64,000 bases of DNA from NCBI GenBank assembly GCA_033442325.1, contig JAWQFM010000002.1:2507144-2571143 (forward strand). Reading direction: 5' to 3'. The notes under the pieces are model-generated. The model saw nothing but the letters and a program-made list of their open reading frames with translations, searched no databases and was not told the origin of the DNA. The position numbers were made by a program, and so were the translations under genes. Shown in pieces: positions 22,651-45,460 of the stretch (its first letter is position 1; the number at the start of each line of letters is the position of its first letter). This stretch comes from Salpingoeca rosetta. Lineage: Eukaryota; Protista; Choanoflagellata.

Positions 22651-23538
22651 GGCGCTCCTGTGTGTGTGTGGATGGAGATAGGGGTGTGGGGGTGTTGGTT
22701 GCTGGTCTGCGCTGTGCTGTGCTGTGCTGTGCGGAAATGCTTTTACTTGCCTTGCTTCTTGCTTGCTTCAGCCGTATCAGTTGGCCGATCGCGGTCGCCA
22801 GACCCACCCACTTCTTTGCCGTCGTCACCGCTGAAGCGGAAAAATTGTTAATGATTTCACATATTCGTCTAGAGGACTTTGACCGGAATTTTTAAACATA
22901 TCTTTCGGTAATTACTGATAAAGGGGGCGTGCCAAGTGCCCGTTTTGGAGACTGAGCTAAGTCGATTCACTGGACACTGAAATAAGTTGGTGGGGCGTAC
23001 GAAGTGCCCGCGCATGAATCACCTGATCGACTCGACACAAAACAGCCGAAAGAAGCCAGCCAAGCAAGAAGCAAGCCGTGTTGCAGGCTGCTGTGAGAGT
23101 GTTGTGTGTGGTGTTTTCGAGTGTGTGTTGGGCTACGCGAGCCACGCTCCTCGCCTCGATCGAACAAGCAAGCAAGCAAGCGAGCAAGAAAAAAAAGAGA
23201 ACGGTTCGTTCGTGTGGTTGGTGGGTTGCATTGCCCTCCAGTCTCCAGGACTAATGATGAAGAACTTGTGTGTGTGGGTGTGTGTGTGCGTGCGCCATGT
23301 GTGTGTGTGTGGTACTTACTGGTGATGGTTGTGTGATGTGATGTGATTTGTTTCTCGTTTGATGTAAACGACGTTGCTCGCTTGCTTGTGTGCTTGCGTG
23401 CTGGCTCTCTCGTTGCCGAGCATCACCGCCGCCGCCACGCCAGCTCACACTCATTTCCGCTTTTTTTGTTAACTTGTGTGTGTTATCTCTCGCCCGTGCA
23501 TGTGCATGTGCATGTGCTGCACCACCAGCATTGCAGCC
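22651..23538. promoter_or_regulatory. Probable bidirectional promoter between the ADAM (-) and TULIP-PqiA (+) genes
   Basis: Divergent starts, with an AT-rich, microsatellite-free core at ~22840-22990. Confidence 0.45.
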
Positions 23539-23657
23539 ATGGCGCCAACAGCCGGCCAGAGCAGAGGAGATGGAGGAGGACGAGGAGGAGCAACACCAAG
23601 ACCAAGAACAAGAAGCGCAAGAACAACAAGAATACCACCACCATCACCAGCAGCAGC

Positions 23658-23691
<34 letters not shown>

Positions 23692-24508
23692 CCGACAACA
23701 ACCGCGACAGCACGTCGTCGCCACTCGAGAAGGGTGCCAATACTCTCCATCTTCGCGCTCGTCGTCGTGCTCGTTGCGTGCCCGTTGTTTCTGCTGTGTG
23801 CAACGCATGCCCACGGCGCACAGACGACGACAACGACGACGACGACGACGGCAGCGACGACGACGGCAGCGCAGCTTGGCAAAACCACGACGGCAGCAAC
23901 AACAGCGCCGCCTGCGCCGTCAGATCCGCTGCGCCGGTGGCTCTATGATCTCGTCATCCCCGTGCCTGACATCTCCCTCCCTGTGCCGTTGATCGGCAAG
24001 TTCAACCTCACCCAGCTGTCGTGCACAGACCTGCTTCTCGGTACCATCTCCTCCAGCGCAGACAACGGAACGCTGCGCGCCGGGTTCAATGGCCTCAGCA
24101 TCCAGTGCGATGGCGTGTACGCAGTCACTTTGCTCAAGCAGAAGGTCTCTGGCCCGCTCAAGCTCATGCTCACCCCGGCATCCCGCATCGGCGTCGCCAT
24201 CGACATTGTGTGGGACGACGACAGCTTGCCCTACGCCGTCGTGCCCACCACGCTCGACGTGAACCTGGCCACGCGCCTGAAACTCAAGGACGCGCCCGAT
24301 GCCATCAACAAACTCCTCAACGAAATTGACAAGGCCCTCACGCCAACCGTCAACAAGGAGGTGGAAAAGACCCTTCGGTCCCTCATCGCCAACAACCTCA
24401 CCGCCGTCGTGCAGCAGGTCGCAGCAGGCATCAGGCCCATGCTCAACCCGCCAACCCACTACCCGGCCCCTCCGGCACCCCCAGGTACACACATGCAACG
24501 ATGCGGGC

Positions 24509-24607
<99 letters not shown>

Positions 24608-24678
24608 TTTGGTGGTGGTTTTGGTGGTGGTGATGCACGATAATTATGCCCACTTGCACACACACACACACACAACAG

Positions 24679-24725
<47 letters not shown>

Positions 24726-27383
24726 CACGCAAACATAAACGCACACACACACATATAATACTTTCCCCTGCGCTCACCACGCAACACGTCGCACACCCAA
24801 CACGATGCAGGCGCGGACGACCTGACACACAGCCCGCTGATTGAGGTGCTCTCGTCGTTCATTGACATGGGCTTCTACGACAACACCATCAACACGCTGG
24901 TCGACGACCTCACCAATGGCACGGGCACCATCACCGCGCCCCTGACCAATGCATCTGTGCACGTGCCGCTGGGAAACCTCGGCAGCATCACCCTCGCCGC
25001 CAGCGAGTTTGCTGTGGGCGGTCTGGACTCGTGGTCCAACCAGACAATTGTGCTGCACCCGCACGACAACACGAGCCTGCTCTCCAACATTGACCTGCGC
25101 ACGCTCGACCTCAACGTCTCCGTCTCTGTTGTCGTCAACACATCCACGTCCACGCAGCCGCTGAACGAGAGCGCCACCATCGTCTTTGACCTCAACAACG
25201 TCGACCTCATTGCAGACATGTTCCTCGCCCTGGACGAGGTAACACTCGACGGCCTACCATCCTCCCGCGTCCTCAACATCGACTGTCTTCTCGCCGCAAC
25301 ATCGGACGTCAACGTCACCCAGTTGCTGCTTGACTTCACGGTCGACCAGCTCGCCATCCTGGCCGGCGCTGGCTCCACGGAGCAAGACATCGACCTCCTC
25401 CTCACCAACACCATCGATGTGGTTGTTGCTGCGTACGATAAGGCCATTGGTGACGTCGTAAACTACGTGCTTATGGAGGTGGTGCGCCCCGATGTGAACG
25501 TCGCTGCCTCTGCCGCCATCAACAACGCCACCTGCCCACCTGTGGCCAAGCCCTCGTCTCTCGACGCATCGGCGCTCGCAGGGTACCTTGCCTCTGCTGG
25601 CACCAGCTTCATCTTCATCCTCATTGGCATTGCCCTGTTTGCCGTCGGCCGCAAGTACGCCAAGAGGCGCCGTCACCAGAAGCGCAAGCAGCAGCAGCAG
25701 CAGAAACAGCAGCAACAGGCGATGAACGGCAACGGTGTGGGCGCTGGCAATGGCAATGGCGCCGGTGTTGCTGGCAGTCGCGCCGCTCGCCTCAGCAGCC
25801 GGGATTCGTTTGCCACCTTCGCCGACGAGCAGGACGAAGGCGAGGCAACGGCACTGCTGGCCAGTCGCATCGACCGCACGTCCTCTGCCGCCCCCTGTCT
25901 GGCCCTGGAGCCGACCGTGTCCACCTTTGCCCGCTACTCGGTGCCGCTCGTGCTGCTGGCCACCGTTGCCATCTTCATCTGGTCCAACAACAGCGTGGGC
26001 GCCTCTGTCATCCCCGCCATCACCCTCGGCGATGATGTGATCAAGTTTGGCCCGCTCTTCTCCTTCGACCTCACCAACAGCGTGCGCGACATGTGGAACG
26101 CCAAGGTGTACGCGCTCTCCCTCCTCATTGGCGCCTTCTCCGGGAGCTGGCCTTACCTCAAGCTGATGCTCATGCTTGCGTCGTGGCTGCTGCCCACGGC
26201 ATGGCTCTCTGTTTCTCGCCGCGAGTTTCTCCTGCGCATGCTCGATGCGCTTGGCAAGTGGTCTCTCATCGACAGCTTTGTGCTGGTCATGATGATCGTG
26301 GCCTTCCGCTTCCACCTCGACATCAGCAAGCTTGTGGACGAGCCCGGCCTCGCCTCCTTTGACATCTTCGTCCAGCCCGGTCGCGGCATCCACACCTTCC
26401 TCATTGCCACCATCGTCTCCCTCACCATGTCGCACATCATCCTCCACATCCACCGCACCGCCGTCGACTACCACCGCCACGGCGGCCGGCACTATGACGA
26501 GCGCGACGATGACGACGGCGAGAACCAGTCCCTCTCCCGCCACACGTTCACCGCGCAGACGGGCGAAATGTACCGCTTCACCGTCCTGGGCGCCGTCCTC
26601 GTCGTCTTTGCGTTGCTTGCAAGCATCGTCCTCCTCTCTGTCGGCACGTCCATCGACGCGTTTACGTTTGAGTTCAAAGGCCTTGCGGCGCTGGCGATGA
26701 GCCTTGACGGCGACGATCCAAACCGCACCTTCTCCCTCATCACCATCGGCACCACCATCCCATCGTCCGTGGAGAAGCCGGACAGCTTTGGCATTCGCTA
26801 CATCCAGGCCCTCTTCTTCCTGCTCGCGCTGGCGGTGCCGCTCGTCCATCTCGTCGCCCTCATCTGCATCTGGTTCCTCCCGCTCTCAACACACGCGCAG
26901 CGCCACCTCTTCCACGCTGCGGAGGTCCTCAATGCGTGGTCGTGCCTCGACGTGTTTGTTGTCTCCCTCCTGGCGGCTGTGCTTGAGATTGGCCAGTTTG
27001 CCCAGTTTATCATTGGTGACAAGTGCGACCCCATCGATGCCATCATCAAGCCTCACGTCAAGAAGTGGCCGCGCTTGCGTGATGACGCAAAGTGCTTTGA
27101 TGTGAAGACGGACCTTGAGTCCGGCAGTTGGGCGCTGTTTTCCGCAGCCGTCGTCAGCGCTCTCACCATCTGGGTGGTGATGCCACTGTGTCACCGCGCT
27201 GTTCGGGAGCGGTTGTACGGGCCCGCTGCTGCCCACACGCGCGACCAGCGCTTGCACACCGTCAACAGCATGGCGGCGCTGTCGGAGGAGCCCAAGAAGT
27301 GTGCAGCGTGTACATCGTGTGCTCCGTGCATGCATGCATTTGAGAAGATGCACGTCATCAAGTACGATGGCGTGCAGGCGTAG
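23539..27383 (+). CDS. Multi-pass membrane protein: extracellular BPI/TULIP-like repeats fused to two PqiA (paraquat-inducible A / LetA-YebS)-like TM domains
   Basis: Two exons, 23539-24484 and 24811-27383 (phase 1). Signal/TM segment RVPILSIFALVVVLVACPLFLLC, then a beta-rich region with many N-x-S/T sequons (LVIPVPDISLP...LSIQCDGVY...SGPLKL). PqiA-like motifs occur twice: FSGSWPYLKL...LGKWSLIDSFVLVMMIVAF and LNAWSCLDVFVVSLLAAV. Confidence 0.8.
24508..24593. repeat. (GAT)n microsatellite in the single intron of the TULIP-PqiA gene
   Basis: Direct observation. Confidence 0.95.
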
Positions 27384-28356
27384 AGAGAGAGAGAGTGTGT
27401 GTGTGTGTGTGCGCGAACATGTGAGTGTGTGAGAGAGAGAGAGTGTGTGTGTGTGAACATGTGTCAATGTGAGAGAAGGTAACCTGGTCTGCGCAGTGCT
27501 GTGATTGTCGCTTGGTGTTTGTGTTTTCTCGATTCTGTTGTGTATCAATCACCCTTTCCTTTTTCTTTCTACTGTCGTGTTATCCCCCCCCCCCCGGGGC
27601 CGTCGTCATGATATTCTTTGTCTCGTGGACGAGACAACGGCGCTTTCTCTCTCGCATTGCTTGTGGTGTCGGTGTTGTTGCTTTGCTTTGTATGGATTGG
27701 CGCGTGTGTATTTTTGAGAGTGCTGTGGTGCTGATTCTTGTGTGGTTGCGTGTCTAGTGTGCTTCCTACCCACGCTACTGAGACCATTGTTTACTGGCTC
27801 GTCTTGTGTGCGTGCGTGCGCACTCATGTCGACGTGCGCGAACGAGCGCCGAGACATGGCACGCGCAAGTGTGGCTTGTGAGCAATGTGTGCATGTGTCG
27901 TGTCGTGTCAGCATTAGTCTCGCTTGCTTGCGTGCTTGGATTCCTTTGTTATCTGACCTCGATTGTATGAGTAGGATGGATAAAGGCGTGAATGCATTGT
28001 GTGTGCGTGTGTGCGTGTGTCAATGTGCGTGTGTGTGTGTGAGTGATTGTGTGTGCGTGTTTGTGATGAGAAGTGAGTGAGTGAGTAAGTGCAGGCGTGA
28101 TACGTGTGCCTCTTCGCGCGCGTACATGTGAGGCGTTTGTTGACTCGAACTTTTTCTTTGCATGGTGTACTTTTGGCCAAAACAGTGGTGTGAACACACC
28201 GGCACATGCGTGTGAACAAAAACAGGCGCGTTTTCGCGCTGAAGGGCAAGCAACAAGGCAACACAAAGACATCACAAGATGAGACAGAGGAGCAGATGAA
28301 GGGGAACAGGGGGTAAAGCAGCGACAGCAGTCGCAAATGTCGTGACTTGGTGCATG

Positions 28357-45460
<17,104 letters not shown>

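Follow-up and report, generated by a model that had tools for sequence, protein, structure and literature searches.

Does a single gene of the choanoflagellate Salpingoeca rosetta encode a one-chain lipid transporter? The question is raised by a locus at 23539-27383 on the plus strand of the window, the 64,000-nucleotide (nt) stretch of contig JAWQFM010000002.1 analyzed here, in which a first-pass annotation made from the sequence alone had seen BPI/TULIP lipid-binding repeats fused to a tandem PqiA/LetA-like membrane domain. We describe the structure and expression of this gene, the identities of its domains, the logic of its topology and its conserved residues. We consider it fairly likely, if far from certain, that the gene encodes a lipid transfer protein of the TUPAL type, with a probable site in the endolysosomal or food-vacuole membrane.

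Gene structure and domain identities

The TULIP-PqiA gene is confirmed as real and expressed, with two coding exons. Its underlying open reading frames (ORFs) lie at 23476-24513 and 24846-27383, in different frames, and the ORF list and translation place the start codon at 23539 and the stop codon at 27381-27383. Coding exon 1 (23539-24484) holds 315 codons and the first base of a split glycine codon; coding exon 2 (24811-27383) holds the other two bases, 856 codons and the stop. The 326-nt, phase 1 intron between them (24485-24810), which the first-pass annotation does not mention, runs from a GT at 24485-24486 through (GAT)n and (CA)n microsatellites and a pyrimidine-rich stretch to an AG at 24809-24810. 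Its excision unites g|gc as the glycine codon and keeps the frame, giving a product of 1172 amino acids (aa; 315 + 1 + 856 residues). This joint, with 326 nt skipped between GT and AG, is present in 26 raw RNA-seq reads from two 2026 runs (6 reads in run X21 and 20 in X22), and one RNA contig (X5) spans the same 24484/24811 joint. RNA depth is close to zero within the intron and 5-45 reads per position across the exons, and in nearly all RNA reads the first mate maps to the minus strand, as is usual for plus-strand RNA. Full-length homologues align colinearly over the exon junction. The different frames of the two ORFs and the microsatellites between them would suit two separate genes or an assembly frameshift, but this reading is refuted by the spliced reads and RNA contig that unite 24484 and 24811 in frame, and with the colinear homologues its probability is negligible.

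Read from its N terminus, the protein has a signal or anchor segment and then a Thr-rich stalk, which lead into two TULIP domains. One transmembrane (TM) helix and a basic and poly-Q loop in the cytosol connect these to two LetA/PqiA modules, and the tail is Cys-rich. Searches and models were run by exon (exon 1 as 23539-24483, exon 2 as 24813-27380), and residue numbers are counted within the exon concerned. The ectodomain, noticed at first pass as about 500 aa of beta-rich, heavily N-glycosylatable sequence, measures ~480 aa and carries 12 N-x-S/T sequons, 9 of them in the second TULIP domain.

The 'BPI/TULIP repeats' of the first-pass annotation correspond, in our models, to two TULIP domains with a putative lipid-carrying role, both halves of the ectodomain being predicted to adopt TULIP folds. 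At the level of sequence profiles, TULIP-1 (23911-24484, exon-1 residues 125-315) is demonstrably a true homologue of the N-terminal domain of BPI, LBP and CETP. A profile of this segment with 17 homologous segments (profile A1) matched the PDB sequences of human BPI (1bp1, E 1.8e-17), LBP (E 7.5e-11) and CETP (E 0.014), in all cases at the N-terminal domain. Three homologues (P0013, P0033 and P0036) carry the Pfam domain PF01273, P0013 at 33.5 bits against a threshold of 28.8. Pfam LBP_BPI_CETP matched neither half of the S. rosetta ectodomain, nor anything in a genome scan that had no positive control and is hence uninformative. The AlphaFold2 (AF2) model of TULIP-1, with a predicted local distance difference test score (pLDDT) of 88.8, has the TULIP layout: nine long antiparallel strands, with a short helix before them and one of 43 residues after. 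All 43 of its Foldseek matches at E<=0.001 belong to the TULIP superfamily (LBP, BPI, CETP, Der p 7, JHBP, Takeout and SPLUNC1), with LBP, BPI and CETP among the top matches.

TULIP-2 (24819-25547, exon-2 residues 3-245) is supported as a TULIP domain by its modeled fold. Foldseek returned TULIP matches to the exon-2 AF2 model with probability 1.0, and VIA-align superposed ~190 residues on Takeout (Z 9.0, model 8-240), on a beta-carotene-binding protein (Z 8.7) and on CETP (Z 7.0), and most of the domain on LBP (Z 6.4). Like human BPI, LBP and CETP (PF01273/PF02886; structures 1bp1, 4m4d and 2obd), the ectodomain would thus have two tandem barrels, with profile-level homology in the first and the fold in both. 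The human proteins, however, are soluble and secreted, whereas the S. rosetta ectodomain is membrane-tethered and acidic rather than cationic (net charge 0 for TULIP-1 and a strongly acidic -27 for TULIP-2), and TULIP-2 aligns to N-type, not C-type, domains. The disulfide of human BPI is also missing: in the profile-to-BPI alignment, the columns of Cys135 and Cys175 hold Cys in about half of the homologues and Leu in the S. rosetta protein. A family-specific Cys pair, C162 and C190, is present.

The tandem PqiA/LetA-like domain proposed at first pass was borne out by the two Pfam matches expected of it and by structure. Against exon 2, Pfam PqiA (PF04403) scored 58.6 bits (E 8.7e-16) over two stretches, and each module alone exceeded the PqiA gathering score of 23.8 (28.6 bits for module N and 42.2 bits for module C), far beyond chance. 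A Pfam PqiA scan of the 55.4-Mb genome matched the window at 26070-26360 (module N) and 26739-27017 (module C); the scores of its two matches were 43.9 and 29.7 bits. The AF2 model of exon 2, built on a 33-sequence alignment (mean pLDDT 80.7, both modules mostly 85-97), shows two four-helix, tetraspanin-like modules with beta-strands in their outer loops: module N at 25911-26486 (residues 367-558) and module C at 26577-27230 (residues 589-806). Of the solved structures, E. coli LetA (9n8w) matches it best, with a Foldseek E of 5e-9 over 451 columns and a VIA-align Z of 13.8 over 316 residues (model 367-800 against LetA 59-418). The next structural matches after LetA are TARP and claudin, families that have been reported as distant relatives of LetA too (PMC13017536). 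A phmmer search of exon 2 against PDB sequences found only LetA, at a non-significant E of 0.2, and a profile of the whole exon found no match there; the LetA link therefore rests on Pfam and folds, and the TULIP-2 link on folds.

Both hydrophobic modules also carry the W-S-x-x-D-x-F-V motif pointed out at first pass, at exon-2 residues 483-490 (26259-26282) and 709-716 (26937-26960). The first overlaps GKWSLIDSF (26253-26279, residues 481-489), the counterpart of LetA 361-GRWSMLDLF-369, and the second overlaps NAWSCLDVF (26931-26957, residues 707-715) of module C. With E. coli LetA (YebS) and PqiA the protein thus shares tandem four-TM modules, extracytoplasmic beta-sheets, a WS-x-psi-D-psi-F motif and a polar network. 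It differs from them in its fused TULIPs and in lacking zinc ribbons: a search for the CXXC-Xn-CXXC pattern found no CxxC pairs ahead of either module, and the only Cys cluster is C830-C839 in the tail. LetA-like relatives without zinc ribbons have been described in parasites and marine protists (LetA paper, Nature 2026, PMC13017536). A further difference concerns the MCE proteins LetB and PqiB, the partners of LetA and PqiA in E. coli. An exon-by-exon, six-frame search of the 55.4-Mb genome for MlaD/MCE (PF02470), which a very fragmented gene could escape, found no such domain, and the four bacterial control genomes matched. This absence fits, and lends support to, the first-pass idea that fused TULIPs take the place of the MCE tunnel.

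The topology follows from a few landmarks. A hydrophobic signal peptide or signal-anchor (23734-23814, residues 66-92, core 68-86, hydropathy 3.05 over 19 aa) precedes the Thr/Ala-rich, mucin-like stalk (23815-23910, residues 93-124), which was recognized in the translation and through weak mucin-type Pfam matches; the hydrophobic segment places the TULIP pair outside. A single TM helix returns to the cytosol (25584-25661, exon-2 residues 258-283), as judged by hydropathy and a long model helix at 252-305. Because the basic cluster KRRRHQKRK stands directly after it, followed by the poly-Q stretch, the ensuing loop is read as cytosolic, matching the TM segment and basic/poly-Q loop of the first-pass annotation. 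The loop (25662-25910) is further Gly/Asn-rich and disordered, with pLDDT <50 for residues 308-357. Since the first TM helix of the PqiA part runs outwards as in LetA, its beta-sheets come to lie on the same side as the TULIPs. The sequons at exon-2 residues 392 and 637 fall in predicted outer loops.

The conserved polar network and its module

We then asked which of the two modules retains the residues on which LetA depends. In LetA, mutation-sensitive residues S321, K328, S364, D367 and T402 form a polar network in the C-terminal module (PMC13017536). Our bacterial comparison set consisted of E. coli letA and pqiA (K-12 record) and 31 further two-module loci of sampled Pseudomonadota. In the C modules of this set the positions corresponding to S321, K328, G361, S364, D367 and T402 are each occupied by the LetA residue in 31/31, and all six are variable in the bacterial N modules.

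In the S. rosetta protein, these residues map to S443, K450, G481, S484, D487 and S536 of the N-terminal module. Across 33 eukaryotic homologues, S443, K450, G481, S484 and D487 are each conserved in 33/33, and the position of S536 is Ser in 30/33. Within the GKWSLIDSF motif, the residues G, K, W, S, L and D do not vary across the same 33 homologues. In module C, by contrast with module N, the network positions are degenerate, reading A672, H679, N707, S710 and D713 in S. rosetta. Among eukaryotic C modules generally, the S321 position is mostly A, K328 mostly H, G361 mostly N, S364 either S or A and D367 either D or E, and T402 is variable. The network is thus invariant in the eukaryotic N module, the reverse of the situation in bacteria, a detail that we did not find in the TUPAL preprint, the LetA paper or Wong & Levine. 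From this pattern of conservation we read the module that directly follows the TULIP pair, the N-terminal one, as the probable working half. The invariant network and motif together suggest a working transporter rather than a passive anchor.

All 33 eukaryotic N modules score higher with the bacterial C-module profile than with the N-module profile (median 31.2 vs 23.5 bits), and 21 of the 33 eukaryotic C modules prefer the bacterial N-module profile. In a tree of 80 modules over 173 columns, the free topology sets both eukaryotic modules against both bacterial ones, with a support of 99 in the SH-like approximate likelihood ratio test (SH-aLRT, quick search). Two constrained trees were both retained in the approximately unbiased (AU) test and fitted marginally better, the 'swapped' one with a log-likelihood (lnL) gain of +2.4 (AU 0.53) and the 'colinear' one with +0.4 (AU 0.50). 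The free, swapped and colinear topologies are statistically equal, and the arrangement may reflect either a reversed fusion or a differential loss.

Two observations on the bacterial loci (L085-L117) concern the modules themselves. In every sampled two-module gene the Pfam PqiA score is far higher for the C module (~165-197 bits) than for the N module (~98-153 bits), and several of the genomes surveyed hold the two PqiA modules as separate adjacent genes.

Proposed function, location and alternatives

The combination of TULIP and PqiA domains is already published, which removes the novelty implied at first pass. A few protist or amoebal CETP/BPI proteins anchored by a C-terminal PqiA domain were noted in 2017, with the suggestion that both parts handle the same lipids (Wong & Levine 2017, PMC5507252). 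LetA-like proteins of protists followed in 2026 (PMC13017536), as did the naming of the TUPAL class, which includes a '2xBPI N-terminal' subclass and counts Opisthokonta among its clades (Guillen-Samander et al. 2026, bioRxiv 10.64898/2026.09.11.750981). That TULIPs replace the MCE tunnel is likewise a published view. The TUPAL preprint names no choanoflagellate, our literature search found no paper combining 'choanoflagellate' and 'PqiA', and the supplements of the S. rosetta horizontal gene transfer (HGT) paper hold no entry for PqiA. By domain identities (TULIP plus PqiA) and topology, the S. rosetta protein belongs to the TUPAL class; it adds a member together with two testable details, the network in module N and a conserved sorting motif.

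The closest functional precedent is PfTUPA of the malaria parasite, which resides in the digestive-vacuole membrane and is required to clear internalized membranes (bioRxiv 10.64898/2026.09.11.750981). Both proteins join TULIP and PqiA parts without an MCE partner, and each is proposed to move lipids between a lumen and the membrane that bounds it. The only TULIP part of PfTUPA, a divergent ApiTULIP, is C-terminal, whereas the S. rosetta protein has two BPI-like domains at its N terminus, a position that requires the extra TM helix and cytosolic loop; its location and function, moreover, are predictions. NPC1 offers a functional analogy, drawn in the PfTUPA preprint, in that, within a lysosome-like organelle, lipid bound by a luminal domain is passed on to a membrane domain that is polytopic, but the folds and families are unrelated and NPC1 handles sterol.

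For S. rosetta, we infer lipid transport, its direction, its substrate and its location along the following lines. The two TULIP domains would lie on the extracytoplasmic or luminal side, linked through the TM helix and the loop behind it to the LetA/PqiA part, a pseudo-dimer with eight TM helices. Lipids that they load from the lumen or from outside the cell could then pass to the LetA-like domain for insertion into, or extraction from, the limiting membrane, a step that the water-accessible polar network of one half may perform. The fused TULIP pair would stand in for the bacterial MCE tunnel of LetB/PqiB, and an acidic dileucine signal may route the protein to the endolysosomal or food-vacuole membrane. 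At the food vacuole, the protein could recycle lipids from the membranes of ingested bacteria and of internal vesicles, the analogy being PfTUPA of the digestive vacuole in Plasmodium.

The signal in question is EATALL (25842-25859, exon-2 residues 344-349), which stands in the cytosolic loop ~20 residues before the first TM helix of module N. A motif of the form [DE]xxxL[LI], often [DE]xxPL[LI], occupies the equivalent loop site in 19 of 29 homologues, compared with 1.5 expected from shuffles. Acidic dileucine motifs bind adaptor protein (AP) complexes and target proteins to endosomes or lysosomes or drive endocytosis. The conserved motif, which we did not find described in the TUPAL preprint, the LetA paper or Wong & Levine, thus points to an endolysosomal or food-vacuole location. 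Taken with the acidic luminal part bearing 12 sequons and with the precedent of PfTUPA, it favors a food vacuole or lysosome.

Several points weigh against this assignment. The TULIP-1 segment of S. rosetta, searched alone, gave no match to Pfam LBP_BPI_CETP at E values up to 10. The TULIP-2 profile matched nothing among PDB sequences and so provides no sequence-level link to solved TULIPs, and its Z-scores of 6-9 lie in the range that VIA-align grades as middling. We also list here a prediction of a TULIP-1 and TULIP-2 complex, whose score of 0.00 is evidence neither way. Because zinc ribbons are absent, regulation and stability must differ from those of LetA. As to location, dileucine motifs also serve endocytosis from the plasma membrane, and EATALL is therefore no proof of lysosomal residence; the site assumed by Wong & Levine in 2017 (PMC5507252) was the plasma membrane.

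These last points bear on the strongest alternative, in which the same molecule sits in the plasma membrane, of the cell body or the collar, and, at its outer leaflet, exchanges lipids with the surrounding medium or with attached bacteria. Such a protein would serve the uptake of exogenous lipids or the maintenance of the outer leaflet. A Thr-rich stalk and heavy glycosylation would suit a surface protein, and it is generally known that dileucine motifs drive AP-2 endocytosis from the surface. PqiA-anchored CETP/BPI proteins have, besides, been described as anchored there (PMC5507252). The sole member localized by experiment, PfTUPA, nevertheless sits in the digestive vacuole, and the conserved [DE]xxPL[LI]-type motif, with its preceding acidic residues, resembles lysosome-directed signals. 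We regard a plasma-membrane site as possible and, on balance, unlikely.

Quite improbable, in our estimate, is a membrane-tethered, BPI-like antibacterial or lipopolysaccharide-binding effector of the phagosome with the PqiA part as a mere anchor. The homology of TULIP-1 to the N-terminal domain of BPI/LBP is genuine, and S. rosetta feeds on Gram-negative bacteria. The activity of BPI depends, however, on a strongly cationic N-terminal domain, and the absence of positive net charge from both TULIPs argues against a bactericidal role of this kind, as do the invariant network and motif of the membrane domain.

The first-pass annotation had also raised bacterial lipid cues, an idea that is pure speculation. 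In its extended form, the protein and its paralogue (see below) would be a route for the uptake or perception of bacterial lipids, including the sulfonolipid rosette-inducing factors (RIFs) and the lysophospholipids, such as lysophosphatidylethanolamines, that control rosette development. Were this so, BPI-like domains would capture bacterial lipids, either at the collar or inside the food vacuole, and the LetA-like domain, in which the catalytic half comes first, would deliver them into the membrane of the host. A predicted lipid-binding ectodomain facing bacteria-derived lipids, in a gene expressed in culture, speaks for this circumstantially. The protein has no signaling domain, though, its family is widespread in protists without rosettes, and nothing ties the gene to rosette genetics; we rate a cue sensor and the wider route for bacterial lipids alike as slightly more remote even than the BPI-like effector.

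Homologues, transcript ends and surroundings

The best homologues of the TUPAL-type protein are choanoflagellate orthologues, with 56% identity in Barroeca monosierra and 37% in Choanoeca flexa. S. rosetta itself has a second, divergent TUPAL gene, on the minus strand of another contig (C19:310791-314343), with at least six exons and 29-39% identity over the PqiA exons. It was found with a family profile and missed by the Pfam PqiA genome scan, which gave only the gene at 23539-27383. The two paralogues thereby place a protein of the TUPAL type among the nearest extant relatives of animals. S. rosetta feeds on bacteria and is amenable to genetics, with genome editing available (PMC7314544), so the mechanism proposed for PfTUPA, an essential malaria protein, becomes testable in a free-living phagotroph. 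The polar network of module N and the conserved dileucine motif may guide experiments on the whole TUPAL class.

Two features near the ends of the protein deserve mention. A 65-residue extension rich in Arg, Pro and Gln (23539-23733) stands ahead of the signal-like segment, whereas homologues begin with short signal-like N termini only ~20 residues ahead of the TULIP domain. At the other end, the cytosolic tail holds a C-x2-C-x2-C-x2-C cluster (27300-27329, C830-C839, pLDDT <50). We considered this cluster as a displaced zinc ribbon, which is unlikely given that, in roughly half of the homologues, the C-terminal tail bears CC or CCxC clusters beside a short hydrophobic stretch. That setting is a better fit for palmitoylation than for a zinc site, and the cluster may be a palmitoylation site.

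Upstream of the start codon, RNA read ends point to an intron in the 5′ untranslated region (UTR). Loose read ends at ~23528 (3 reads in X21 and 5 in X22) carry a consensus that is unique in the window and lies at 23174-23202; a GT..AG intron at 23204-23528 therefore precedes the start codon, with an upstream non-coding exon ending at 23203. If transcribed, an ATG at 23014 would start an upstream ORF that is out of frame. Within the coding region, RNA depth spikes over the poly-Q stretch (CAG/CAA) at 25687-25718, where the reads also show numerous loose ends and, at 25704, an apparent A>C; these look like cross-mapped reads of other poly-Q transcripts and no real variant. In the 3′UTR, a minority of RNA reads (11/72 and 5/27) carry an A>T at 27582, and a 1-nt deletion is seen at 27584; both may represent an allele or error. 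Same-strand RNA depth is still rising past 27700.

No operon-like context surrounds the gene, and the minus-strand ORFs upstream of it gave no Pfam match. The downstream neighbor, on the minus strand at 28649-34540, is a multi-exon gene of the echinoderm-microtubule-associated-protein-like (EML-like) kind with tandem beta-propellers, matching the first and second EML-type propeller (PF23409, E 7e-37, and PF23414). Positions 24510-24760 of the coding intron are nearly all microsatellite, with ~30 GAT repeats, GGT/GTT units and long (CA)n runs, and the intergenic DNA flanking the gene on either side is full of CA/GT runs of a similar kind.

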